In this document: piece by piece, positions 1,163 through 32,100 of the stretch
How positions within the stretch are numbered: position 1 is the stretch's first letter
Layout of the letters: the number at the start of each line of letters is the position of its first letter
Assembly (NCBI GenBank): GCA_025786725.1
Contig: JAHLTZ010000077.1
Coordinates: 1-36,208, forward strand
Direction of reading: 5' to 3'
Length of the DNA: 36,208 nt
Origin: Syncephalis fuscata S228
Taxonomy: Eukaryota; Fungi; Zoopagomycota
Notes under the pieces: model-generated
Told to the model about the DNA's origin: nothing
Database searches by the model: none
Seen by the model: the letters and a program-made list of their open reading frames with translations, nothing else
Position numbers and translations under genes: made by a program

Positions 1163-2467
1163 TTAAGAAGTAGCATGAATGGCCTTCTTGGCCGGAGCCG
1201 CCAATGATGACGGTGCTGGGTGTGCATGTCCTCGACGAGCATCAAATACGCGCAGTGCTTCATCGAGTCGTGCACGTTCTACATCACTCATAGGCAATGA
1301 GTGTTCGGGAGCAGGAAATGCCCGTTGTCTTGTCTCATCATGGTACTGTTTTAGTGCTGCGGTAATTGGTTCAGCCAATCGTGCATATTGTTTACAAAAG
1401 CTAGAATAATTATAATGTTAATTAATAAATACAAATCATTAATTTTATTTACTTACCGTGGACTAAACTTATCAAATAGACCAAGTACATCTGGGTAGAC
1501 TAGCACTTGACCGCTGCACCCAACACCTGCACCAATACCAATAGTAGGAATTTGAAGTCGCTGTGTTACGGCAGCTGCTACTTCATCTGGCACACACTCA
1601 ATAACAATGCCCCAGCAGCCGGCTTCTTGCAAGGCAAGTGCATCTTCAATAATGCTAATAGCCTATGCAGTGTTTCACAAATAGATCGTTCATTAGTAAG
1701 TAAAGGGTAAAAAACAGTCGGTGCTGGTCTTCATTGCGCCATTACTTACTTGATTGGCTTTTTTACCTTGGACTCGGAAGCCACCGTAGGTGTTCAGGTG
1801 CTGCGGTCGCAGTCCAATGTGGCCTAGCACAGGTATACCGGCCTGCACCATACGTTTAACACTATCAGCCATTTCACGGCCCGCTTCGAGTTTCACTGCC
1901 TCGACATTGCCTTCCTGCATCATACGGAAGCCATTGCGCACTGCTTGTTCGGCACTTTCTTGAAAACTACCGAAAGGCATGTCCCCAATTAGCATTGCAT
2001 GACGACACCCCCGTCGAGTGGCACGGCAATGGTGCAACATTTCCTGTAGAGTAACGGAGACGGTACTGTCGTAGCCGAGTGCCACCATGCCAAGTGAGTC
2101 ACCCACCAGGCAGACATCGACGCCAGACCGATCTACCAAAAGACCCGTTGGATAGTCGTAGGCCGTTAGCATTGTTATGGGTTTTTGGGTGTCATAGAGA
2201 CGACGAACGGTTTGTAAAGTTACTTTTTTTCTTGGCTGATCTATTGGCATCAAAATTTATACAATTAATAAACATTTATTACCACATTATACAGATGTGT
2301 GCATAATAGCATTTACCTTCGGTTGGAGTGGTTGGACGTGCACTGTAGTAGCGCAAAGGACAGACAGCCGCCAGCGGTAAATGACCTCGTACTCGAGCAA
2401 TACCAGTAGCAGCACTAGCACTACGGGCAACACCACTAAACATGTTGCAGGTTGTTCGTAGCCACAT
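1163..2467 (-). CDS. panB: Ketopantoate hydroxymethyltransferase (PanB/Ecm31) with probable mitochondrial presequence
   Basis: Exons 2467-2317, 2240-1750, 1662-1457, 1400-1163. Motifs [43 protein letters not shown]. The N-terminus is Arg/Ser/Ala-rich and lacks acidic residues. Confidence 0.96.
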
Positions 2468-3708
2468 GAATAAAATATTTGTCTGATGAATGTATTCAAA
2501 TGCAATTAGCAAAGTGTAAAGTTAAGGTAAAATACGCAAAAACATAAAAAAAGCTCTTTGCCAATAAATGAAACACAGGTGGTGAAATTCTCACGATAAC
2601 TTGAAGCTATAGCGACATTTATTTAAAACAATGAGGAGCCAATGCTTTACCAATACTGTATTCTATAATAATTGAGCTTGATATTAAACTACAGCCATTT
2701 TTATCATTACATTGACCATTTCGCTAATGAACGTGTTCTATGATAGTAACTTATTTTGGTGGTAGAATAATTTTATTTATTTATTTTATCTTTTTAATAT
2801 AACCTAATATTTTAAATTATTTATTAATAAAGATTTTAATTCATTTTCAATATTTTTATTCATATATTCCATTGTTGTATTGTGTTGTTACAATATCTAA
2901 TTACGGTATTATGGCCGCGTAGTTATCTACCATGCGATTGATCCATAACATTCATCATGAAGTCGAACAACATGATAACGATAACATGTGAATAGACACG
3001 ACAACAATATACTAAATACTAGGACTAACAATCATAAACAAACAGCTATCCAAGAACATAACTAGTAGATACTTGTTGTTTACTGACACATGATCAACCA
3101 TATGAACAAAGCTCAAGTTTTATTAACAATAGTATTTACTATACACTACTAGCTTTATTAGGACTATAATAAACATATCTATATTTCTAGTTTATATTAT
3201 TTTTTCTACTTTAGTTAAAAGTGTCATTTAGTTATTAAAAGCTTAACTATGGTAATAGATAATTAAAAAAGAATCATTTATTATTTATTTTATAATAGCA
3301 TCAGGCTCATGTTGTACTAAGGCAAGTAATTAATTAGTGGTCACTGATGCTTAGGTGATAGAAGTAGGCTTGGAAAAAATGTAACTATTCAGTTGCTAGT
3401 CGTTGCGATGTAGTGCTAGGTTGTTAACAATCAACAATTATTCTTATATCAATATCAGTACAACATCATTTCATTATATGATAGTGATAGATTTTTTACT
3501 ATCCATGGTATATTTACAAATAAACAGTCGATTTTATTGCCAATATATATAACTACAATATTCACATTAACATTGACATATTTATACCGGCCTATGCTTG
3601 TAGCTAATACAATATAATTGCACATGTTTTTTGTTAATACTATTACTTGATTAATAATTAAGAATTATTGAATACAAATAGAACACAATTATCAATATAG
3701 CAATTTGA

Positions 3709-4269
3709 TTGTTTTTTTTAAAATGGAACCATAAGTTTATTACAAGTTTGCACAGTTAAATAGGAACAACTAATTGCAAGCTTATTAGTAAAAGTGATTT
3801 TATTGACTAATGACTGGATAAACCGGAGCATTGGCCAAAACTTGATATATAAATAGACTGGACGGCGTAGTTGTCAAATGGTCTTGTTTTTCACCGAATA
3901 TATATCTAAAGTGTATTGAAATAGTGGCTTGATTACACTACCAATGCTAATGTCTTGAAACCATCGATTATGATTGACACTTGGGTTTGCATCGAATTTT
4001 GCAAAAAACCATGCATTCATGCATGCATTTTTGACATTCCGCACTATTACCACGACGAACCAAAGCTGGATTACCATCCATCGTAGCTGGTTTAGCATCC
4101 ACCACGGCTGTAGTGGCTATCAAAGCCACAACGACGGTGCAAACGACGGCAATAGAAAGCTTCATGGTGATATTAATTTGTTAAAACAAACAAATAAAAG
4201 AGATAGTAGAGTGTGGTTGGTATAGAGTGTATAGTAGTGCGTGTATAGCAAGAAGTAGAGTGTAATGAT
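3709..4269 (-). repeat. Palindrome 1, left arm (561 bp)
   Basis: Reverse complement of 4803-5363 (constant coordinate sum 9072). Two substitutions seen (3784/5288 and 3861/5211), both 3' of the CDS. Confidence 0.97.
3968..4165 (-). CDS. Small secreted cysteine-rich prepropeptide, copy A (65 aa)
   Basis: MK plus a hydrophobic signal ending VDA, a short propeptide ending LVRR, and a 27-aa tail with 6 Cys. Good Kozak context (CACCATG). Intronless and identical to copy B. Confidence 0.88.
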   Translation of the reverse strand: MKLSIAVVCTVVVALIATTAVVDAKPATMDGNPALVRRGNSAECQKCMHECMVFCKIRCKPKCQS

Positions 4270-4554
4270 CGCAACTGGCTATAATAAAAGTAAAGAATTA
4301 TATAAAAATACCATTTTGATACATTAAATTTGTTTTTACATCAAAGCTGTGTGCTATTCTGTATGCATGCAGATGTTGAGAACCGAATCGGTAGAAATGG
4401 CAACAAAGACATTATTATTATTTTTTACAAAGCCAAAACAATATACTTGTTTTTACCAAATAGTTAAATCATGTAACAGAAAATACAGGCGAATATGTCT
4501 ATTTTTATCGCATATGTACTGGATTATTATCATTGTTACATTATTCGTGCAAAT

Positions 4555-4623
4555 GACCGGGCAGGTTAAAAGAAAGACCAGGCAGGTTAAAAGAAAGACC
4601 AGGCAGGTTAAAATAAAGACTGG
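4555..4623 (+). repeat. 21-bp minisatellite, about 3.3 copies, in the palindrome 1 spacer
   Basis: GACCRGGCAGGTTAAAAKAAA at 4555, 4576 and 4597, plus a partial GACTGG at 4618. Confidence 0.95.
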
Positions 4624-4802
4624 AAGCATTCTATCCCGCCCTGAATCTATTGGTACATGTGCACCTCAAACCATTACCTGGATTGTTTTATTGGTTCATA
4701 TTACACACCAATGGTATATCTTGTATACTACAGTATACTAGCATCTCAGCATAACCATAAGTTTAAATAGCCCACAAAATATACACAACCAACTGCGATA
4801 TC

Positions 4803-5363
4803 ATCATTACACTCTACTTCTTGCTATACACGCACTACTATACACTCTATACCAACCACACTCTACTATCTCTTTTATTTGTTTGTTTTAACAAATTAAT
4901 ATCACCATGAAGCTTTCTATTGCCGTCGTTTGCACCGTCGTTGTGGCTTTGATAGCCACTACAGCCGTGGTGGATGCTAAACCAGCTACGATGGATGGTA
5001 ATCCAGCTTTGGTTCGTCGTGGTAATAGTGCGGAATGTCAAAAATGCATGCATGAATGCATGGTTTTTTGCAAAATTCGATGCAAACCCAAGTGTCAATC
5101 ATAATCGATGGTTTCAAGACATTAGCATTGGTAGTGTAATCAAGCCACTATTTCAATACACTTTAGATATATATTCGGTGAAAAACAAGACCATTTGACA
5201 ACTACGCCGTTCAGTCTATTTATATATCAAGTTTTGGCCAATGCTCCGGTTTATCCAGTCATTAGTCAATAAAATCACTTTTACTAACAAGCTTGCAATT
5301 AGTTGTTCCTATTTAACTGTGCAAACTTGTAATAAACTTATGGTTCCATTTTAAAAAAAACAA
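4803..5363 (+). repeat. Palindrome 1, right arm (561 bp)
   Basis: Inverted copy of 3709-4269. Confidence 0.97.
4907..5104 (+). CDS. Small secreted cysteine-rich prepropeptide, copy B (65 aa)
   Basis: Same protein as 3968-4165. AATAAA at 5268 and 5331 downstream. Confidence 0.88.
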   Translation: MKLSIAVVCTVVVALIATTAVVDAKPATMDGNPALVRRGNSAECQKCMHECMVFCKIRCKPKCQS

Positions 5364-8300
5364 GCCAGTTGTAATTCTTTAAATTATAGAGTGAGCTGTG
5401 ATTGGTACATGCATGCATTTCATTCAACACTATGCCCATTGTTATGGGGGGTAATCATTGTTTCGAATTTACAAATGCATCAAATCTAGGCATATCATGC
5501 TACATGCTGTGCAACTGCCATCATTCAAATGGTGGCTAATCTAAATCACCTGAAATTGATTCTACAATGAGTATTGTTTGTAGGATGATGTATCATGGCA
5601 TTTTAAGCAATGGGACATTCCAACAAGTCATTTTCGCCATCAGTTTTCTGTTGTAAACTGAAATACATCGGCTAAATTACACGCAATACAATATCCAGAC
5701 ACTAGACTAGATACAATAAAAAATTCTGCTCAAACATCAACAATTTTGAGTGCATAATGGCTGTGGATTGCATATAAATTGGTAATTATCCAAGGCCTAA
5801 CTGCTGCTTACATTTATAAAATCACTTCTGACAAGTTAAGCAAAATAGAATGTAGAAGAACAAGCCAAAGCAGAAACCAATGGAAAAACAACTGGCAGCT
5901 CAAAAGCTTACTGGTTTAACTTATAACAAATCATTATCGGCATACCATGTTAAGCTGCGTTTATCAACGATCTAACTACTGATAATACAGCTAGAACAAT
6001 AGCTTTAAACGAAAGTAACGCATGAAATTAAAAACATTGTACATAGCATTTAATAAAACTGCAAAATACACACATGCTGTTGTTACTGTTCTATAATTCC
6101 GCACAGGGTTTTGTGAAAGTGTGACCAAGAGATATGCCATGTGATTGGATCACCAGTTAAAGTCGCATGTGATTGATCACAAGAATAATATATTTATTGG
6201 ATATTAATACCGATTACTAGTAACAAATGTCTATTACAACAATATGACGTGTAGCTACTTGTTAGTTGTGAGCATATGAGCAGTCACCTGAACTAATATG
6301 CTGCACTAATGATGAAATACTACAAGGCATTCCAGTTCTATTATTAGTTGTGTTTACTATACAATGATAGCTTTATTCAATATAAATAAAGTAATAGTCA
6401 AGTTTCTAGTCCAATATTATTTCTACTTAGTGTCATACAAGTTATTCAATTTATTATAGTTAAACTGTGGTAATTAATGACCAATAAGGAATAATTTTAT
6501 TATAAAAGCAATACAACCAAACAACACATTGTATTCTGAGCGTTAATGTAAGCGTTAATAAGCATCAGAAATTAACGTTATAGGATAGCAACAGGACAAG
6601 GTGTTGCTTGGTCATCTAAGTTGTGATTCCTAAAACTAGAAGCGTAACAACATAATTAGTAAATAGTCATCTGATACACAACACAATTTATGAGCTATTA
6701 TAATCATTATTTATAATACTGTTAATAAATAGAGAAATTTTGAAAAATGTCTTGTTTTTAAAATTCAAAAATTTTAAATTCACTCCTCTTAATAAATTAT
6801 GATTTTAAATAAGCATAAATAAAATTATTAAATTATTAAACCCTTTTATTAAAAGAATATCGCTAAATATTTACCAAACTATTTAAAAAATTATATTTAC
6901 CAGCATCGAAGAAATGAGGATCGCTATTGACGAGTTTAAGCTCGCTAGCGATTGCAATTTTAAGAGGAAAAACAATCTAGCAAGATTATTGCTTATTTAT
7001 TTTGATAAAGACAATTCCAGCAAGAAATTTCAGTTTGTTTGGCTGCCAAAAAGCGGAAACTGGCCTAATAAAAATTGTCCAATGCAATCTTAACCATTTT
7101 AATGGTTGTCCATATAATTTTAGAAATAATATCATTAAATGTATTAATAAATATATTACAAATAATGTTGCTACATTTTTAAATATAAAACCAAAAGATG
7201 TACAAGTAAAATTATTAAGTACATATTTAATTATTAAATACACACTAACAATTGTAATAGCTTAACAGATGTTATTATTTTCATTATAAAACTTAATCTG
7301 CTTTTAATTCAATAAAAAATGACATTGTTACAACAACAGTAATAAAATTATGTAAATTTGACTAAACAATTAAAGAAAGAAAAAATAAAAGTAGCTTACT
7401 CAAATGTTTTAATACCAATTTAACAATAATAAAATATTATTAGTGTCAAACGGCTTTAACTTCTAACAATAGCTTAGATTAGCAGATTATAACAAAAGTT
7501 GTAATTGCATAAATTCCAACAATAAGCTAAAATGAATTGGGTTATAAAAAGGCACCTTATTATTTGAGTAACAATATTAGTTATTTATTATATTGCTGAA
7601 ACATAAACAAAAGTTATAAAGCTAAAAATCACTGATGGGAAAAAAGTTAATCGCAATTAATGCAACAATTTTAATTTAAGACCTTTTATTTACGTAATTT
7701 AGTTAATTGTAGCCATATTAACAGTAATGCCAATTGTGTTCTACTTGTTAAAGGGCTTCCAGCGATATACTTGTGGTAAATGCAACTCAAAAACACAGTA
7801 AAAAACATACTGTGTAAATATTAGCACTAATAGTGTTGAAGCAGTAGTTAATGTTGGAATAAAAGTTTACAACTATTTTTAGTCAATATAGTTAGACCAA
7901 AATAAGCTGAATATTAGTCAATTAACATTTATATGTTAAACATTAAAGCATAGAGAACACCAGAGGCTAACATGATAGCACAGCATCAAGATAGAGTGCT
8001 GTTTGCTCGTTTAATCCACGGCTTCTAAAACTAAAGCTATAGCACTAATGGCATTGCATTAATACTTTTAACATTTGAATCAAACAGCCATGTATATATA
8101 TGTCACTATTATTAATAGCTATTTGTGATGCTTATTGCAAATGATAGTTCGTTGCTGGTTCGCATTTAATTTATGCACCAAAAGCAATAAATCAAATACA
8201 GCTTTGTTAAGTTTATAATGTTTTTAAACTTTACCTAGATTAATTGCTTATAACATGCTAAAATCATTAAGCATACAAACAAACAATACACGCCAATATT

Positions 8301-8528: not shown

Positions 8529-9014
8529 TTAGCATTTTGGGAAGTTCTTTGGCAGTTTATCGTTACGGCCAAAGTCCTGTGTCCAGTAAGCTTTGCCTCC
8601 ACTGCCTACAGCCATGCCACTGCCGAAATGCGTGGCATCGCTTACTAAGTTTTGGAGATGAAGAGGTGAGCGAATCCAGCTGTCCATAACTTGCTCAATA
8701 GATGTCTGTCCGCCCGCAACATTTTCTCTTACGCTGTTCCATCCGCCACCGCTGATAGAGCAGCGTTCCATTAAAGCAGGTTCACCAGCGAAAGAATGAC
8801 TCATTTGGTTATTACGAGCTTGAAGTGCACTATGGGTCTGTGCAGCTTTGTTTAAACCGGCATCAATTGCAAGTGGTGGAAGCTTTCGTTCACCGCGGAA
8901 TTTGTTGACCAGACAAAGCATCTTTGTCGGATCGAAGCTAACTGGACCGGCAGTCACTTCAATTGTGCTAGCGGCAAATACGGTAATTGCGACGAGAGTG
9001 ATGAGAAATTTCAT
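8529..9014 (-). CDS. Secreted CAP/SCP (PR-1 superfamily) protein of bacterial YkwD-like type, copy A
   Basis: Signal peptide, then LVNKFR..LPPL, AAQTHS, MSH, ENVAGGQ, V.DSW..SPLH..N, G.G and YWTQDFG motifs. Intronless. Confidence 0.95.
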   Translation of the reverse strand: MKFLITLVAITVFAASTIEVTAGPVSFDPTKMLCLVNKFRGERKLPPLAIDAGLNKAAQTHSALQARNNQMSHSFAGEPALMERCSISGGGWNSVRENVAGGQTSIEQVMDSWIRSPLHLQNLVSDATHFGSGMAVGSGGKAYWTQDFGRNDKLPKNFPKC

Positions 9015-12889: not shown

Positions 12890-13375
12890 ATGAAATTTCT
12901 CATCACTCTCGTCGCAATTACCGTATTTGCCGCTAGCACAATTGAAGTGACTGCCGGTCCAGTTAGCTTCGATCCGACAAAGATGCTTTGTCTGGTCAAC
13001 AAATTCCGCGGTGAACGAAAGCTTCCACCACTTGCAATTGATGCCGGTTTAAACAAAGCTGCACAGACCCATAGTGCACTTCAAGCTCGTAATAACCAAA
13101 TGAGTCATTCTTTCGCTGGTGAACCTGCTTTAATGGAACGCTGCTCTATCAGCGGTGGCGGATGGAACAGCGTAAGAGAAAATGTTGCGGGCGGACAGAC
13201 ATCTATTGAGCAAGTTATGGACAGCTGGATTCGCTCACCTCTTCATCTCCAAAACTTAGTAAGCGATGCCACGCATTTCGGCAGTGGCATGGCTGTAGGC
13301 AGTGGAGGCAAAGCTTACTGGACACAGGACTTTGGCCGTAACGATAAACTGCCAAAGAACTTCCCAAAATGCTAA
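12890..13375 (+). CDS. Secreted CAP/SCP protein, copy B
   Basis: 161-aa protein identical to 8529-9014. AATAAA at 13448. Confidence 0.95.
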   Translation: MKFLITLVAITVFAASTIEVTAGPVSFDPTKMLCLVNKFRGERKLPPLAIDAGLNKAAQTHSALQARNNQMSHSFAGEPALMERCSISGGGWNSVRENVAGGQTSIEQVMDSWIRSPLHLQNLVSDATHFGSGMAVGSGGKAYWTQDFGRNDKLPKNFPKC

Positions 13376-16300
13376 ACAAGCAGCGACGTACGACTAAGAT
13401 AGAATAACGAACAACGCTAGAACCGAATCAGCGCTAAAGTGCTAATTAATAAAACTTATTACAATTTATTGTCTTTGATTTACTGATTTGCCTACAAGTG
13501 CTAGATCGGATTAAGCAGTTTGTATCTAACAAATTGCCACTGCTAGTATCGATACAAGCAGGCTATTTAATATGTTTTAAAAGAGTTTGCCGTTGATGTT
13601 GGCAATATTGGCGTGTATTGTTTGTTTGTATGCTTAATGATTTTAGCATGTTATAAGCAATTAATCTAGGTAAAGTTTAAAAACATTATAAACTTAACAA
13701 AGCTGTATTTGATTTATTGCTTTTGGTGCATAAATTAAATGCGAACCAGCAACGAACTATCATTTGCAATAAGCATCACAAATAGCTATTAATAATAGTG
13801 ACATATATATACATGGCTGTTTGATTCAAATGTTAAAAGTATTAATGCAATGCCATTAGTGCTATAGCTTTAGTTTTAGAAGCCGTGGATTAAACGAGCA
13901 AACAGCACTCTATCTTGATGCTGTGCTATCATGTTAGCCTCTGGTGTTCTCTATGCTTTAATGTTTAACATATAAATGTTAATTGACTAATATTCAGCTT
14001 ATTTTGGTCTAACTATATTGACTAAAAATAGTTGTAAACTTTTATTCCAACATTAACTACTGCTTCAACACTATTAGTGCTAATATTTACACAGTATGTT
14101 TTTTACTGTGTTTTTGAGTTGCATTTACCACAAGTATATCGCTGGAAGCCCTTTAACAAGTAGAACACAATTGGCATTACTGTTAATATGGCTACAATTA
14201 ACTAAATTACGTAAATAAAAGGTCTTAAATTAAAATTGTTGCATTAATTGCGATTAACTTTTTTCCCATCAGTGATTTTTAGCTTTATAACTTTTGTTTA
14301 TGTTTCAGCAATATAATAAATAACTAATATTGTTACTCAAATATTTGAATGTATATATGCCGAACAATCTTTAAAAAATAACTTTTAGCACTATATTTAA
14401 ATCACGACGATATTATTATTGCTAATGCTTACACCTCATCATTAACAACTATATTTCCTAGTATGTCTATATTTTTATTAAAGCTATTTATCATAACTTT
14501 ATAACATAATGATGTGGGGCAGGCCAATAATTAGCTAATACTGGCCATCATTCTAAATAAAATCTATTATTATAAATGTTGGTTTGTGGTACAACGAATA
14601 CAATTATCGTATATTACTTATTATAGTGGAGCTATAGAAAGCTTTTATAGCTATTTGAACAAAAAAGAAGGCATAAAGGTATTGGCAATAGGCTTGTTGG
14701 TAATTATAGCATTTTACGATTATTTATTTGTTTTATTGTTTTTTTAACCTTATTACATAATATTAAAAATTTTATTGGTTATTTATTATTATTTAGTGGT
14801 CAAATGAAAATTTTAATAAAATTTGCGCAATTCAACAAGACATTTGTTTTATTAAACATCATGATGGGCGGTGAATGATATCAATCATCAAATACGCATC
14901 ATTATATATTTATTATCCAGTATGCATATATACTTTATTCACTTATATCATTAAATCATTGTATTCGCACATTACTGCGTTATTGCAATTGGCGCTACTT
15001 TTATTCCTGGCCTATTCCATTTTGAACTTTTTATTTTTATATATCCCCATCATTTGATTTTAATATCACAAAATTCATAACTAATTGGAATTAATTATTT
15101 TAATCATAATTAGTTCTTAACAAGTGGGCTAATAAATACTTTAATAAAGTAATAAATCTGCATATACTTGTATTATTTGTTCTATCAATATAGCTAAATA
15201 AGCAAAACGAATCAAAGTTTATTTTTTAAAAAGTTAGAATCAAGCAAACAACAATCCTGGATAGCTCGTAAATCATATATAATGTAATATATAAATATAT
15301 AGTGCATATGACCTAATGAATGTGTGGCAAAAAATTAGTTGCATTTTATTAATAATAAAGTTAGAGCAAAAACAGTTTTGGATAGAGGAAGGCTAGATGA
15401 GTATAAAATGATATATAAAATGATAAATGTACGGTAAGAAAGCATATAAAATAATGTTAAAGTTATAGTGCATATAGTGCAATGAGTGAGATGCATTGAA
15501 ACATATAAACAATAAATGTGCCTAGTATATCATTAAATGCTGTATAGTAGTGTGGGATATAATGGAAATGATATAAGTGAATTTAGTATATATGTGTACT
15601 GAATAATGAATCTATGGTGATAAGTATTTTGATTACTAACGTTACTCACCACCCACCATCATGCTCAATAGAAAAAAAGTAGTATTAAATTTGACTAATT
15701 ACAATATGTTGGTATTCACAATAAATCCCTCTTGTTTAATTAATAGAAAAATAACGTATAGCTGCAATAAGTAAGAATGTGTCAATATCTTGGCCCAATT
15801 TTCTTGCCAAATTATCAAAATTCATTATATTTTGGTTACATAGTTGCCATTTTATATCTAAAAAAATATAAAAATATTATCCAACCATGCCATACATACT
15901 CCATATACGAGCATGGAAAAGCTAAATAAAAACTTTGCTATTTAGTGATTATTTGCGATTAAAATCTAATGATATTGAAATGGCATATTGCAAATTGGCA
16001 AAATATTTAAACCCAAATAAATGTTTACAAAACACTAAATTATAAATTTAAATATAAAGTATGTAAAAGTATCAATAAATGATTTAGTATAATTAAGTAG
16101 TAAAATACATTGCTATATGAATTAAAAAACAATAGTAAAATCTAATTAATAAAATGCTAATAGTGCTATATATCACTTTGCGTAAAATACAGCAATTGTG
16201 GAGCCACATTAAGTACTTTCTTTTACTACATTATGAATTAATAAATGTGTGTCATTTTGTTTAATTATTAATATTGTTAATAATAATAATATTGTTATTA

Positions 16301-16737
16301 TTGTTGTTGTTATTATTATTGTTACTATTATTACTATTATTATTAACTGTTGTCTTCTATACAGCTTAAACGTAACATCCCCATTCACACATACACATAC
16401 GTGTATATATATGTATGTATAATAAACAGTTCTGGCAATAGGAAAGATAACATTATCGTATAATAACGTCCATCAAAGTCTTGTTCATTGCTAAGATATA
16501 TGCATGCTGACATGGATGAACATATCATCGAACGTGATAACACGAATACCGTGTCAATGGCTGAGTGATACGAGAAAGGAGATAGATAGATAGATAGATA
16601 GATAGAATAAAAGTAAAGAAAAAATAAATGGAGAAAAACAAGCGCCATGGAAATAAATCATGTATACGAATTGGCTAGTAAATGGTTAGTTATAATTTCA
16701 TAGGTTGGTCGCGCAATTAATTGTAGTGTGCTATTGC

Positions 16738-19700
16738 TTAAGCAAGTGTGCCGTCACCTTGAACGTTCATAAAACCTTTGCTCTTCAAGTCGAGTCGTTC
16801 AAGTAAATTGTGGTAAATAAACTTGTAACTCCAAATATTACCCTTCATACGACGAATATCGACAATGTAAAGATTTGTAAGGTTCTTAATCTTGCAAATT
16901 TCCACAACAAAGCGGACTTCATCACCAGCATCAATGCTGGGCTCTCCATAGACAGGCTGGACGACCGTTGTCTGAGTAGCTGAGCTAGCAAAGATAGACT
17001 CGCTATCTGGAATGGCTGCCGAGCCTGATGAGTTAGATGTAGTCCTTGTTGAACCAACAATAGATGCTGGATTGTCGTTACTGCTGCCGCTACCTGCACC
17101 GGGAATAGCATGTGGTACTGATAGACGTCTACCAAGTAGACCACGTAGCGTGCTGGTTCGTTTCCAAGTATTACTACCGCTAGACAGCGAGTCTTGCTGG
17201 CTGCCGGCGGATGACGAGGTGGCAGTCGTTGTGGTACGTTTTGGTGCATGGCGACTTGGACGAACGCACTTGAACTTGAATTCACTTTCACGTAATATTT
17301 CAAGACCCATTTCAAGAATAATTGCGCGAATCTCTGTGACCACTTCCTTCGGTGGACGTGATGTTAGGGCACCTTCATCAATGGCACCGCCATGTGTACG
17401 TAGCTTGACGTCATGACCCGGCAAAATGTTGGTAGGCGATGAACGACGTGGATGTTCGCCTCTGGGTATTGGTTTGCCTAATGAACGTTTACGGAACCAT
17501 TCCATTACCTTCTTGGCCGTACTTGTGCTGCTACCATCAACACGCGATTGCCCCTTATTTCTTCCAGAAGTGGCCGATATGTCAGTACCATTTTGCTCTT
17601 CAGAAGCAATAAGTGCCGCATTGGCTGCTGATTTAGATTCACCGTCGTGATGGAACAAATGGCTAAAGTTACCACTCATTACTTCGCTAAATGCCTTGCG
17701 TTTTGAATTGCCACTACGACCTGGTACAGAGCTCGAATTGCTGCCAGAACGACGGTCGAAAAGCATGCTTGTCAAGTTAGAACGACGTTCACGACCAGAG
17801 TCAGAATCATTGCCTCGACTACCGGTGGAGTGGATTGAGGCATTATCGGCGGTAATTGAGCGATGGCGTTCTGAGCGTGAATTATTTGAATGTGGTAGAT
17901 CCGCAATAACATCATCCTCTTCGGCCATTCGAGTATATGGCATCATTGTGGTGGGACGTGTTTTTGTAGGACGTGTTGGATGCTTCTTGCCTTGTTTACC
18001 AGCAGCCGATGCATCATCCAACGTTCCTTTGCCCCAATTAGGCTGAGGCGAAATGGGTGGTGATGGAAAGGCAGCCGCCGTTGCGTCACCATTCTGTTGC
18101 TCGCCAGAAAGTGAAGTAGATGAGCTGCCATCTGCTCCAAGTGCATGATCGTCGCGGAATCTAGCACCGATTTCTGTGCCATCTACCAATGGCTCCATTT
18201 CCATTGGATTGTTATTATACTCTAACTGAATTGTATGCCGCTTAGGATTGGAGGTAGATGGTGGAGCAAGTGATGCTGCAGGAATAGAGGCTAAATGCGT
18301 AGCCGATGCAGGTGGATGTTGATAGCTAATTTGAGCAGGTGCATGAGTAGCTGGATCGACCATCACAGATGGTAGAGCTTCAATATCATCGCCGTGGGTC
18401 TCTTCAAAGATATGAGCGTAAGCGGCAAGCCAGCGATGTTTCTTAATGACATCCATGGTGCAGCGACGGCGTGGATCGGGTACGAGCATTTTACGAAGAA
18501 GATCACGAGCATCTGGACTAATGTAATCAGGGAATACCAGTGAAGTAGCCAGAATGTATTTGTACAATAGATTGATGTTGTCGCCGTCAGGATTGGCTGG
18601 ATCGTCGTCGTATGGTAGATAGCCGGCAAGCATGGCGTATAAGATAACACCACATGACCAAATGTCCACAGCCGTGCCAACGTACATACCCTCGCTAACG
18701 ACCAATTCAGGAGCAGCATAGCAAGGTGAACCGCACGAAGTAGCCATTAAATCACCTTGTGAAATGTCAAACTGATTTGCAAATCCAAAATCTGTAATAA
18801 TAACATCACGATTACGATCTAACAAAAGATTTTCCTTTAAATAGTGGTATCGTGTCAGTAATCGTCTTTTTAAATCACTATTTATCATACTGTACATACC
18901 AGTTTTAAATCACGATGTACAATATTTTTAGAATGCATATAGCTAACACCTAAATACAAAAGCAGTAATATTAGCCATTGCTTACATTATCTTAGTATCT
19001 AATTAATTACTTACCGCTAATAAGCTGAGCAAACAAACGGCCTGCGTCTCTTTCTTTTAAATAACGATGTGCCAGAATATGGTCAAACAATTCACCACCT
19101 AATTATCATCATAATATCAATTAATTAAATAATTTCTACTACTAAACTAATCATCCTATTTACCAGAAGCGTATTCCATCACAATACCAATATATTTTTC
19201 TGTTTCAATAACATCAAATAATCGAACAACATTAGGATGTCGAACCGACTAATTAATAAAAATAAAATAAAAAGTTATTTTCTATAAATATTAAATACAG
19301 CTTTTACACAAATACTTACTCGAAGTACCATAATTTCACGCTTAATTTTTGCTAACCGCGTACTGCTATCAACGTTTTCTTTACGAATAAGCTTAATAGC
19401 CGCCTATAAGCAATTAATACCAGATTAATATTGTTAAACCGAATAGGAGCACTAATCGATAACTTACCTCTTCACCTGTATCGACGTGCATGCCCAGCTT
19501 TACTTTGGCAAACTCGCCTTCACCGACTGTCTGCAGCATAACATAAGGCCCAAGCATGTTGTGTTTTTTAGGATACAGTCTTGCAGAGGCAGAAGCACGA
19601 TAGCCATGCCCTCCACTGCCTGCCTGTGTGTTAGGCACTATTTGGTCTCCCGCCGCACTGGGTAGACTTGGCATAGGAGGCACCACATCGGCATCGTATG

Positions 19701-29112: not shown

Positions 29113-32100
29113 ATGGCTACAACTGGACCTGTACTGGCGGCAACCAACGCCCTCTTGCGAGACCATAGCCATAACAGTAACAATAGCACCAACAGTAGCA
29201 GTAACAACAACAACAACAGCAGCAGCAGCAATAACCATAACACTAACAACAATAGCAATCAACAGCGCGAATGTAATAGCACAGCAACGTCTCCCGTTAT
29301 AAAAAGTATACCTGCTCGACGTTCTATAGCCATCAATGTAGCAGCAGCTAACATTTCCTCGTCTTCGTACTCTCTACCTTCGTTTGATCGATCTAGTCGC
29401 GAAAGTGACGACGACGACAACGACGACAATGATGATAGAGATCATACTTGGGCAACTGCACCAAATACACCACTAGTGCTTGAAGAAGATACATTAAAAC
29501 AATTACAAATGATGCTATCGAGCGATTCACCAACTAGTAGCTACGTTGGTAACGATGCAGCTGTCCCTTTGAATAGTAGCAATAGCAGTGATAATGGTGC
29601 CATGCCACACCATCGTTCACGCCGTGCCTACAGCGTTACTGACGACAATCAACATACCCTTTCAGCTGTAGAACTATGTGAAGAGTGTGCTGATCCATTC
29701 TCTGGTGTACCTCAGCCGTGTCTACGTCGTCCTCTTACTTCACCATTACCCGTACCAACAACAACAAACACGGCCAATATTAACATCCCGGCCACTACAC
29801 CTGTTCATATTGCGGTATTATCTGCTAAAGGTGCAGCTAAAATGGCGCCTATGCTCCAACATGTACCACAACGCGTTCAATCACTACCCACTGCCATTCA
29901 CATGGATAGTGCCTTACTTGGACGTACCCATGCTGCCACTTTAGCCGCCGCCGTATCATCCAATCAACATTCAGCGGAGTTACCAACATCTCCACGCCTA
30001 CGTCGGAGTAGCAGTCTTGATCAAGTGGATAAATTACAATTGGACCAATTACATCGTTGGATTATCGGGTTTTGTGTGGTTACATTTGATTTAGAATTAG
30101 GACATGGTAAATGACAAAGTGTTACAGTCATTCACTAATGATTAATTACCATTCATCATTTAGCTATGGAATTGGTTTATCCCCCCTTTGAATTGGATCC
30201 ATATCTTAAACAGAATATGTAAGTAGATAAATAGGAATAGTAACCACTTTGGTTAATCTGTATATATATACTTGTAGTTCTTTTTGTTCATTTCCCGACT
30301 CACACGCCGTTTCTCTAGGCGATACAGTGTATAGCTTTCGTGTACGGGTTGGCTTGGCTCAATCTACAGCATCAACAGCCGCACTAGGTCTTCTACACTA
30401 ACACGATCTCAATCATCGGGACCAGTCAAGCCTAAACTTGCTTTGCCTGGTATGTATGGATATAAATGTGCTTTTACATAGATATCTAATAAATCCAAGT
30501 AGATATTTCTGATCATGATGGATTTCTATATGGTTATGTACTATTTAGACAACGAAAAGATGCTCGACTTCGACGTGGCTATTTTCAGGTAATTACTTTA
30601 ACAATCATGCTAATCATAATTATAGCAAGTATTAACTTCAATTGTTACTCCTTTTATAATTGTAATAGAAATCACTTGTATTGTTGAGTAAACAACAGCT
30701 TCCAGGTTTATTTCTCGACATGGTACGTCGTGTTGGTGCAGCCTATTTCAATGAAGGACGTCAAATATTGGAACAAACATGTCAATCCATTGCTAGCTGG
30801 TAATTATTAACACTACCGTATAACTATATAATGACTAATATAATATAATAGGCCAAAACCATCTTTAGGCAAAACATTGATACTACCTTTGCTTAATACA
30901 AAATTACAAGTTGAATTGCCAGCACGTCATCGTGTTCAACTACTACCGCGAAGTGCTGCTCTTAATAATCCTGAACAATATGTAAGTAATTAATTGAATA
31001 ATCTATTTATTACAACTATTCATACTCATACTCATATGTATATTACATTTATCTGTTTAGTTATTGGCATCTATACCACCGGCTGCTTTATATACACATA
31101 CACGTGAATTTCTAAATGATCTATGGCTATGCTGGGAACTTGTTTTACTGGGAGAACCCATCATGGTATTGGCCAAAGGAACACGTGAATGTGCCGATTC
31201 AGTACTTGCACTTATTAATTTAATTGCACCAGTAAGTGATTAACGATCTAATTAACTATATAATAGGTTACTTAATAGATTATCTAGATCCCTTATGGTG
31301 GTGATTGGCGACCTTATTTCACGGTCCATGACTCAGATTTCAAGGCATACTCATCACGATTAAAGGTAAGTTTAGTCATAAATAATAATAATGACTTTAA
31401 TACTAACAATGTTAATAGACACCAGGCAGTGTTATTGTTGGTGTTACAAATCCATTCTTCAAGGATGCATTTGATCATTGGCCAAATATTCTACGTGTTA
31501 ATCAAGCTGATATGCCGTAAGTAATATTGTGATACCCTTATCATAGATCAATAGATTCTAATAGAATTAATATAAATGCTTATAATAATAGTTTATCAAC
31601 TAGTGCACCAACACGAACACCAAGTCCATTTGAACGACCATCATTAAAAAAGTTTGGCCGTCAAGGCTCTGGCTCATCATTTGACTTTATACCTGTAAGT
31701 TATTCATTTAAGCATTCTAATATTTTATTAAATCGATTAATAGGGTCTTACGAGCAAGCGTAAACGAGTCATCGACAAGGATACGGCACTTATTAAGGAG
31801 ATTACAACATTGACGCAACAACGTGTTAGTCGTAAGTCTATTGCTATTATAATAATAGCATTTTATTAATAATGAATAATTATTTATATTTAATAGCTCA
31901 TCTACTTAATGATACAATCCGTCGATACTTTGCCGATCTAACCGAACGTTTTCTCGAACCACTTGATCGATACTTTACAACGTTAATTCCCGCTCATAGG
32001 TATGTAATTACCCACTTATTATAATAATTGTACTTGTAATAATAATAACAATACTAGTGAATTAACTACATCTCACGCACCACCTACATTGAAATCATTC

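Follow-up and report, generated by a model that had tools for sequence, protein, structure and literature searches.

The contig of Syncephalis fuscata S228 analysed here (JAHLTZ010000077.1, contig C347 of the assembly, whose entire 36,208 nucleotides (nt) are called the window in the following) carries at positions 4907-5104 of the forward strand an open reading frame (ORF) whose 65 codons are translated without interruption. This ORF is a real, unannotated gene for a small secreted peptide of the fungus. The precursor begins with a predicted signal peptide (residues 1-24, MKLSIAVVCT...VDA; 4907-4978) that is near-invariant in a family of paralogues and is recognized by sequence rules only, namely an MK n-region, a 20-residue hydrophobic core and V-D-A at positions -3 to -1, with the cut predicted after A24. 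Residues 25-38 (KPATMDGNPALVRR; 4979-5020) form a propeptide made of an extra seven-residue unit, KPATMDG, and of NPALVRR, whose dibasic end represents a putative kexin site. The predicted mature peptide of 27 residues (G39-S65; 5021-5101) has cysteines at positions 44, 47, 51, 55, 59 and 63, with a spacing of C2C3C3C3C3C, and a net charge of +3 (4 K + 1 R - 2 E); a TAA stop codon closes the frame (5102-5104). A first-pass annotation of the same DNA had proposed this ORF, its 65-residue product, the signal, pro and mature parts, the six cysteines and a charge of about +3, and all of these are reproduced from 4907-5104. In the window, the codon pattern of the cysteine ladder occurs three times, against 0.00 expected from shuffles, and its sites are this ORF, an identical twin and a low-complexity TGY run at 29192-29251. 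Rfam and transfer RNA scans of the window gave no match.

The twin (3968-4165, reverse strand; 65 residues, identical with the stop codon included) and the gene lie head to head in a 569-nt inverted repeat of 99% identity, with arms at 3701-4269 and 4803-5371. The left arm, on the reverse strand, comprises the twin gene, a 104-nt upstream stretch and a 267-nt 3' flank. In the right arm, the 5' untranslated region (UTR) or promoter-proximal region (4803-4906) has DNA matches at 70-82 paralogous loci, and the gene is followed by a conserved 3' flank, a probable 3' UTR (5105-5371, the end of the arm), which about 50 paralogous loci match up to about 5354 and which contains AATAAA at 5268-5273 and 5331-5336 and a run of eight A at 5353-5360. 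The divergent genes are separated by a 533-nt spacer (4270-4802), most of which (4289-4802) corresponds to the upstream region that is canonical for the family, oriented as at the forward copy; a 21-nt repeat is present three times (4552-4620) within this conserved region.

The family to which the gene belongs is large. When the S. fuscata assembly (29.4 Mb, 371 contigs) was searched in six frames with the precursor, 301 candidates yielded 150 scored matches, mostly covering residues 1-30 or 1-40 only. The first 19 nt of the ORF are found, with at most two mismatches, at 267 sites of the genome (1 and 0 for a control pattern), and the family size can be estimated at about 270 genes. From 86 fetched loci, 77 distinct leader-bearing ORFs were obtained. 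A (V/A)-x-A motif is kept in all 77, and 62 end the leader with a dibasic [KR]R, which in 55 cases reads L[VIAT]RR. The KPATMDG unit before NPALVRR is common to some paralogues only and is triplicated in one of them (L022). The same signal and pro leader is also present on other cargos, including a K-rich one with no Cys and with internal KR sites (P0009), a Pro-rich one (P0013) and one with a CCPCC motif (P0014). Judged by these combinations, the leader behaves as a reusable secretion module.

In the data searched, the family is restricted to S. fuscata. A word-based search of 5.8 billion proteins found as its only relatives two hypothetical proteins of this species, with E = 1e-8 to an annotated member (P0001). 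A profile built from an alignment of 24 single-exon precursors (A1) returned 15 proteins, and no plant protein, from 1.84 billion protein representatives. Look-ups of ten of the 15 gave nine hypothetical proteins of S. fuscata and a metagenomic ORF (P0016), repetitive in sequence and covering 26 profile positions only. P0001 is also from S. fuscata, and the four remaining proteins have the family's leader at their start. When metagenomes were scanned with the leader 19-mer, five matches appeared, all by chance (MKLSIA, then unrelated sequence). The homology search with the precursor and its Cys pattern, which the earlier annotation had suggested, finds the family in S. fuscata only, with no relatives outside the species. 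In literature searches, neither the family nor any secreted peptide of Syncephalis nor a six-Cys alpha-hairpin from a fungus was found described, and the family is, by these searches, undescribed. Since the peptide is absent from 15 billion public proteins, as are nine other single-exon paralogues, the gene is unannotated. Indeed, two protein searches returned 15 public models only for the approximately 270 loci, and several of these run into unrelated sequence past the leader. In one public model (P0002, an NCBI S. fuscata hypothetical protein on C311, locus L046) the leader is joined to a translated intron (...LYCILTDYALIACYLL...).

The proposed division of the precursor coincides with a boundary of conservation. 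Pairwise amino acid identity in A1 drops from 0.80 over the leader to 0.30 over the mature part, and RR38 sits where family conservation ends and where, in paralogues built of micro-exons, intron 1 begins, directly after RR(G). The junction is dibasic in 62 of the 77 leaders, and the signal, pro and mature partition of the first reading is supported. A kexin-type gene lies on contig C317, with a P_proprotein domain of 60 bits (above the curated cut-off) and a Peptidase_S8 ORF just upstream, so that the organism has a kexin-type convertase. The peptide is probably secreted and kexin-processed. Kex2-processed secreted peptides of fungi include Kex2-processed repeat proteins and precursors of the alpha-factor type. 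The S. fuscata precursor is similar to Kex2-processed fungal peptides and effectors in its signal peptide, in a dibasic site with Leu at P4 (L-x-x-R / L-V-R-R) and in the presence of a kexin gene in the genome, but it carries one cargo instead of KR-separated repeats, this cargo would be a disulfide scaffold, and the family is that of one species.

The arrangement of the cysteines becomes clear when the gene is compared with its paralogues, 33 distinct single-exon ORFs of which have Cys-rich mature parts. In A1, the six Cys columns vary little or not at all and no other mature position is conserved, with pairwise identity falling to 0.14 when the Cys columns are left out. Besides the near-copies of the gene, 21 paralogues in A1 have the form C-x2/3-C-x3/4-C, a loop of 8-17 residues, and C-x3-6-C-x3/5-C, while the 3-residue loop is present in this comparison only in the gene and its near-copies. 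Aligned as DNA, the gene has its Cys codons in register with those of L021, L044, L048 and L033, with one contiguous in-frame gap located in the loop. The uninterrupted i+3/i+4 ladder, which had been considered a distinctive framework, is therefore, by this alignment, a two-helix scaffold with the loop shrunk to three residues and no separate framework. The best reading of the short loop is a deletion that kept the frame, in a family in which the mature region is highly diverse and the leader and flanks are kept alike. The absence of a defensin or knottin framework is borne out, as no Pfam, defensin or knottin match was found; a Pfam scan of the precursor at E <= 10 gave no family, and a phmmer search of the PDB with the precursor gave no match. 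The best match of an atlas feature search, gallidermin at 0.78, was under the stated noise level and was rejected.

Structure prediction is consistent with a hairpin. With the full precursor and A1, AlphaFold2 places a signal helix at residues 4-23, a disordered propeptide, a helix at 42-50, a two-residue break and a helix at 53-63, with a mean predicted local distance difference test score (pLDDT) of 62. An alignment of trimmed peptides (A2) was dropped for folding as its C-terminal Cys were out of register, and a Cys-registered alignment (A3) was used in its place. With A3 and residues 31-65, the model consists of a helix at 42-50, a loop C51-M-V-F-C55 and a helix at 56-63, with a mean pLDDT of 70 and blocks over the two helices averaging 70-80. 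The peptide probably folds as a disulfide-stapled helix-loop-helix hairpin, and hairpin geometry suggests nested disulfides that would probably pair C44-C63, C47-C59 and C51-C55. No meaningful match came from running both models through Foldseek against the PDB or from a wide VIA-align search with the 35-residue model, the model being very small. Of the options raised in the first-pass annotation (a disulfide-stapled hairpin, a dimer or a metal-binding peptide), family comparison and AlphaFold2 favour the first; the idea of a scaffold without precedent does not hold, since plants have six-Cys alpha-hairpinins.

The plant peptides represent the closest known design. Six-Cys alpha-hairpinins follow the rule C-X3-C-X3-C-X4-20-C-X3-C-X3-C, adopt a helix-loop-helix fold (PMC11591084) and are mostly antifungal (PMC7191063, PMC11591084). 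The S. fuscata peptide and plant members such as nigellin-1.1 (2NB2) have in common a length of about 27-38 residues, six Cys in two triplets, and Cys one helical turn apart on two antiparallel helices, a fold that is solved for nigellin and predicted only for the S. fuscata peptide. The peptide (C-X2-C-X3-C-X3-C-X3-C-X3-C) misses the plant rule in its first spacing, which is X2 and not X3, and in the length of its loop, and it differs in its fungal source. It also differs in its precursor, which consists of a signal, a short propeptide and one peptide, whereas plant genes are multi-module (PMC7191063); nor is it buried in a vicilin precursor, unlike the plant case (bioRxiv 10.1101/2020.05.26.118075). 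By its sequence, the peptide is alpha-hairpinin-like in design and is not filed here as an alpha-hairpinin member; the six-Cys helical-hairpin design is already known from plants, and the peptide appears as its minimal-loop form. When the A1 profile is run against all PDB sequences, nigellin-1.1 comes first, with Cys aligned to Cys and a non-significant E of 0.37, and Ole e 6 is also listed. For one paralogue (L081), 2NB2 is the sole PDB match (E 0.29, again not significant), with Y..C..EC...C.Y-PDY-GM-.C...C...C shared, a likeness that could reflect convergence or very distant kinship. The mature part of this paralogue (L081:794-898, forward strand; DYNNCMFECRMGCSYPDYGMICKTVCDREC...) and that of L084 meet the plant six-Cys motif exactly; the two loci are on G000:C362 and C361.

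Twin CX3C and CX9C proteins of the mitochondrial intermembrane space, such as the small Tims and Cox17-like proteins, also have two antiparallel helices that bear CxxxC pairs and are held together by nested disulfides. The structural principle of CxxxC pairs on antiparallel helices is common to them and to the S. fuscata hairpin, but these proteins are intracellular, Mia40-oxidised, have two disulfides and lack a signal peptide or propeptide, and no sequence relation to them emerged from the Pfam and PDB searches of the precursor.

From the observed sequence features, family membership, conservation pattern and kexin gene, a path from gene to action can be proposed. The 24 N-terminal residues would direct the precursor into the endoplasmic reticulum, where signal peptidase would cleave after V-D-A. 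The six Cys would then oxidise to three disulfides, and a late-secretory kexin-type convertase would cut after L-V-R-R38 to release a 27-residue peptide with a net charge of +3 that starts with GNSAEC. The product would be a very tight alpha-hairpin of helix, 3-residue loop and helix, the first helix acidic or neutral and the second basic. Syncephalis species live as obligate mycoparasites (PMC13188720, citing Benny et al. 2016), and the peptide may act extracellularly on the host fungus, as an antifungal or as a host-manipulating effector. All in all, the gene would be a functional single-exon member of an S. fuscata-specific secreted peptide family, cut by kexin to a tight three-disulfide alpha-hairpin that acts on the host fungus, a reading to which a probability of roughly 0.55 can be given.

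Several points weigh against it. The dibasic site is absent from 15 of the 77 leaders, so that kexin processing does not extend to every family member. The peptide and nine sister single-exon products are missing from the public proteins, as noted above, and exact-product look-ups for the peptide, two variants on contig C146 and paralogue P0001 gave no record, hence no transcript or peptide support. Both structural models are of moderate confidence only (mean pLDDT 62 and 70), and the disulfide pairing comes from hairpin geometry alone. The similarity to PDB entries is non-significant (E 0.29-0.37), and a PDB search with only the 27-mer brings up nothing relevant. The 3-residue loop is below the 4-20 range of alpha-hairpinins (PMC11591084), with a strained or different fold as a possible consequence. 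Finally, the host fungus as target is a reasoned guess from lifestyle and analogy alone.

The copies of the gene bear on whether it is functional at all. The whole window (1-36208) duplicates G000:C146 at about 119.6-155.9 kb, and the window contig is a haplotig or very recent duplicate of part of C146. In particular, identity is about 100% over window positions 16000-19000 and in the kinase region, and only 96-98% in the peptide palindrome, which is present on C146 as the same head-to-head pair. The assembly therefore holds two versions of the peptide locus, and the palindrome is the most variable part. In a genome search, the mature peptide is found at four places only, the two arms and the two C146 copies. 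Five ORF positions differ among these four copies, two of them synonymous and three conservative replacements (V12F, S41R, V53I). An unlikely alternative is that the gene is a young, unexpressed or non-functional duplicate, in which folding was lost with the loop deletion and the ORF survives intact only because the palindrome and the assembly duplicate are very recent. The exact-product look-ups, which gave no expression evidence, would agree with this, as would the non-synonymous nature of three of the five substitutions, the presence in cis of the canonical upstream region beyond -104 at the forward copy only, and the in-frame stop found in at least one paralogue (L005). On the other hand, the full ORF, the six Cys and the RR site are kept in all four copies, the promoter-proximal 104 nt and the 3' flank are present in both arms, and the substitutions are conservative, with no Cys and no RR-site residue altered.

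A different fold is less probable still. The peptide might be helical throughout, a single amphipathic helix whose six Cys share one face, and be linked by intermolecular disulfides into a dimer or oligomer: the i+3/i+4 spacing puts the six Cys within an arc of about 160 degrees of an ideal helix, as calculated from the sequence, and the loop, shorter than in other paralogues and than the 4-20 range (PMC11591084), could strain a hairpin. However, both AlphaFold2 runs break the helix at C51-C55, Pro61 is located in the second half, and paralogues with the same Cys columns have Pro- and Gly-rich loops of 8-17 residues that are unable to continue a helix, which makes the hairpin the family scaffold. 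Binding of Cu or Zn through reduced Cys and the Met and His of the CMHECM stretch is the least probable of these alternatives. CxxC, CxxxC and Met or His beside Cys are indeed known from copper-handling proteins, but the conserved signal peptide and pro-region send the peptide through an oxidising secretory pathway, the Cys number of the family is even (six, sometimes eight) with a fixed register, and Met and His are not conserved (V, I or L at M48; N, D or K at H49), a pattern in keeping with a disulfide scaffold rather than a metal site.

The predicted hairpin is encoded in a segment that evolves very differently from its surroundings. DNA similarity between paralogues spans at least window positions 2883 to 6081. 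About 82 loci match the leader, while about 24-31 match the mature codons; positions 4403-4906 are matched by about 55-80 loci and 5105-5354 by about 50, at 75-89% identity. The contrast is sharpest between tandem neighbours about 2.8 kb apart (L010 and L015; G000:C268:234798-234971 and 232013-232156), which differ at 1 of 600 upstream bases, at no leader base and at 3 of about 480 downstream bases, whereas about 24 substitutions and an 18-nt indel are concentrated within the approximately 115 nt that encode the mature part. Two other pairs (L044/L048 and L014/L053) show the same sharp split, with flank and leader near-identical across more than 1 kb. In the leader, non-synonymous divergence (dN) is well below synonymous divergence (dS), with dN/dS values of 0.097/0.433, 0.047/0.302 and 0.031/0.134 against paralogues, and the leader is under purifying selection. 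In the mature part, Nei-Gojobori estimates of dN and dS are 0.22 and 0.29, 0.54 and 0.50, and 0.56 and 0.19, and omega reaches about 2.6-2.9 in two pairs. Since divergence is raised at synonymous sites as well, selection acting on point mutations is by itself insufficient and a recombinational or mutational process is needed. In the simplest reading, the leader and flanks would be homogenised by gene conversion or unequal exchange, with mature diversity retained or exchanged as a cassette.

A comparable precursor logic is present in conopeptide superfamilies and frog-skin peptide precursors, in which a conserved signal and a pro-region with a basic cleavage site precede a hypervariable, Cys-scaffolded mature part, and in conopeptides the mature regions also have elevated synonymous divergence. 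The S. fuscata family is alike in that identity is 0.80 in the leader and 0.14 in the non-Cys mature part, with divergence concentrated in mature-coding DNA, synonymous sites included. The organisms, leaders and folds are unrelated, and the S. fuscata family differs further in that several hundred flank bases are near-identical between paralogue pairs and in that many paralogues have the mature part in 3-nt exons.

This last feature sets the present gene, a single continuous ORF, apart from paralogues made of runs of 3-nt micro-exons. Exon 1 of L030 has the end ...PALVRRGG|gtatg, after which comes a repeat of about 81 nt with ...aatag|NNN|gtaag... units. In L024, exon 1 has 94 nt and ends in phase 1; joined by hand-decoding to ATC, CTG, GTGAAT, GCC, TTG, TGT, GTG, TTG, AAA, AAT, GCA and AGA, it gives RR|DPGECLVCVEKCKK. 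The reading of the micro-exons rests on this hand-decoded gene and on the first residues of L012 and L023. L024 has the C-x2-C-x3-C opening of ECQKCMHEC in the present gene, so that one kind of peptide is encoded by contiguous and micro-exon genes alike, and the contiguous genes are, by this likeness, an independent support for the way in which the micro-exons are read. L024 (about 2270-2660, forward strand) and L012 (reverse strand) also contain a similar GC-richer element of about 370 nt inside one intron of their 3-nt-exon arrays, with the look of a short interspersed nuclear element or of a miniature inverted-repeat transposable element.

The relation between the two architectures was examined in a quick maximum-likelihood tree of 350 nt of 5' flank plus the signal-peptide codons. 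Its 82 rows comprise 29 single-exon, 28 micro-exon and 25 other loci. Single-exon genes cluster, with 9 state changes against about 24 for shuffled labels, and they do not form one clade, since well-supported branches force at least 6 changes. The forward copy falls in a group of 17 rows, 14 of them single-exon, that is nested among micro-exon genes. The tree, which has no outgroup, is compatible with either direction, intron loss or gain. Single-exon genes are nested among micro-exon genes, flanks are common to both and divergence is confined to the mature-coding segment, and these observations suggest a speculative and rather improbable origin: the intron-free gene could be the spliced product of a one-codon-per-exon paralogue, written back by a processed transcript that recombined through the conserved leader and 3' UTR. 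Mature peptides would then diversify as codon-sized exon modules, and the 3-residue loop would be a splice variant that skipped the loop codons. A simple retrocopy, that is bare complementary DNA at a new site, was rejected, as family similarity extends beyond the transcription unit, by at least 500 nt on the upstream side and far on the downstream side.

The palindrome can also be placed in the layout of the family, whose conserved cassette measures about 2.6-3.2 kb with fairly defined ends when compared with canonical single loci (L007 and L017). Relative to these loci, the reverse copy retains the family's downstream flank (2883-3700), the forward copy retains the canonical upstream region (4289-4802), positions 5362-6081 are the canonical far-upstream segment in inverted orientation, and, within the compared stretch 2883-6081, positions 4289-5354 have the opposite orientation to the outer flanks. 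This layout agrees with an inverted duplication that took in positions -104 to +465 and would have been followed by a flip of the spacer between the arms. Another head-to-head pair of identical family genes, with a 64-residue product and the framework C3C8C1C, lies at G000:C350:117977-121135 (L049), so that palindromic gene pairs recur in the family. The window has a second head-to-head pair, a few kb from the peptide genes, formed by CAP/PR-1-like (PF00188) ORFs at 8529-9014 (reverse) and 12890-13375 (forward) with near-equal scores; a PF00188-like group is among the indicator groups for Zoopagomycota in a published secretome survey (PMC9391592). Beyond the CAP pair, the window contains genes for a ketopantoate hydroxymethyltransferase, a KA1 kinase and an ELMO/PH protein.

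To our knowledge, there is hardly any molecular work on the obligate mycoparasites of the Zoopagales, and we know of no effector or toxin characterised from them. As almost none of the genes of this family are in public protein sets, secretome surveys of the lineage miss them. A contiguous ORF of 65 codons represents a usable entry to a family of about 270 genes, since it is simple to synthesise, express and assay. The intron-free locus moreover shows what the harder micro-exon paralogues encode and adds a link to the alpha-hairpin design. Hundreds of near-identical flank bases around about 115 highly diverged coding bases bear on how host-interaction peptides diversify. If the peptide is indeed a three-disulfide alpha-hairpin, the design of plant antifungal peptides would extend to a fungus that attacks fungi, and this peptide would be the tightest such hairpin known.

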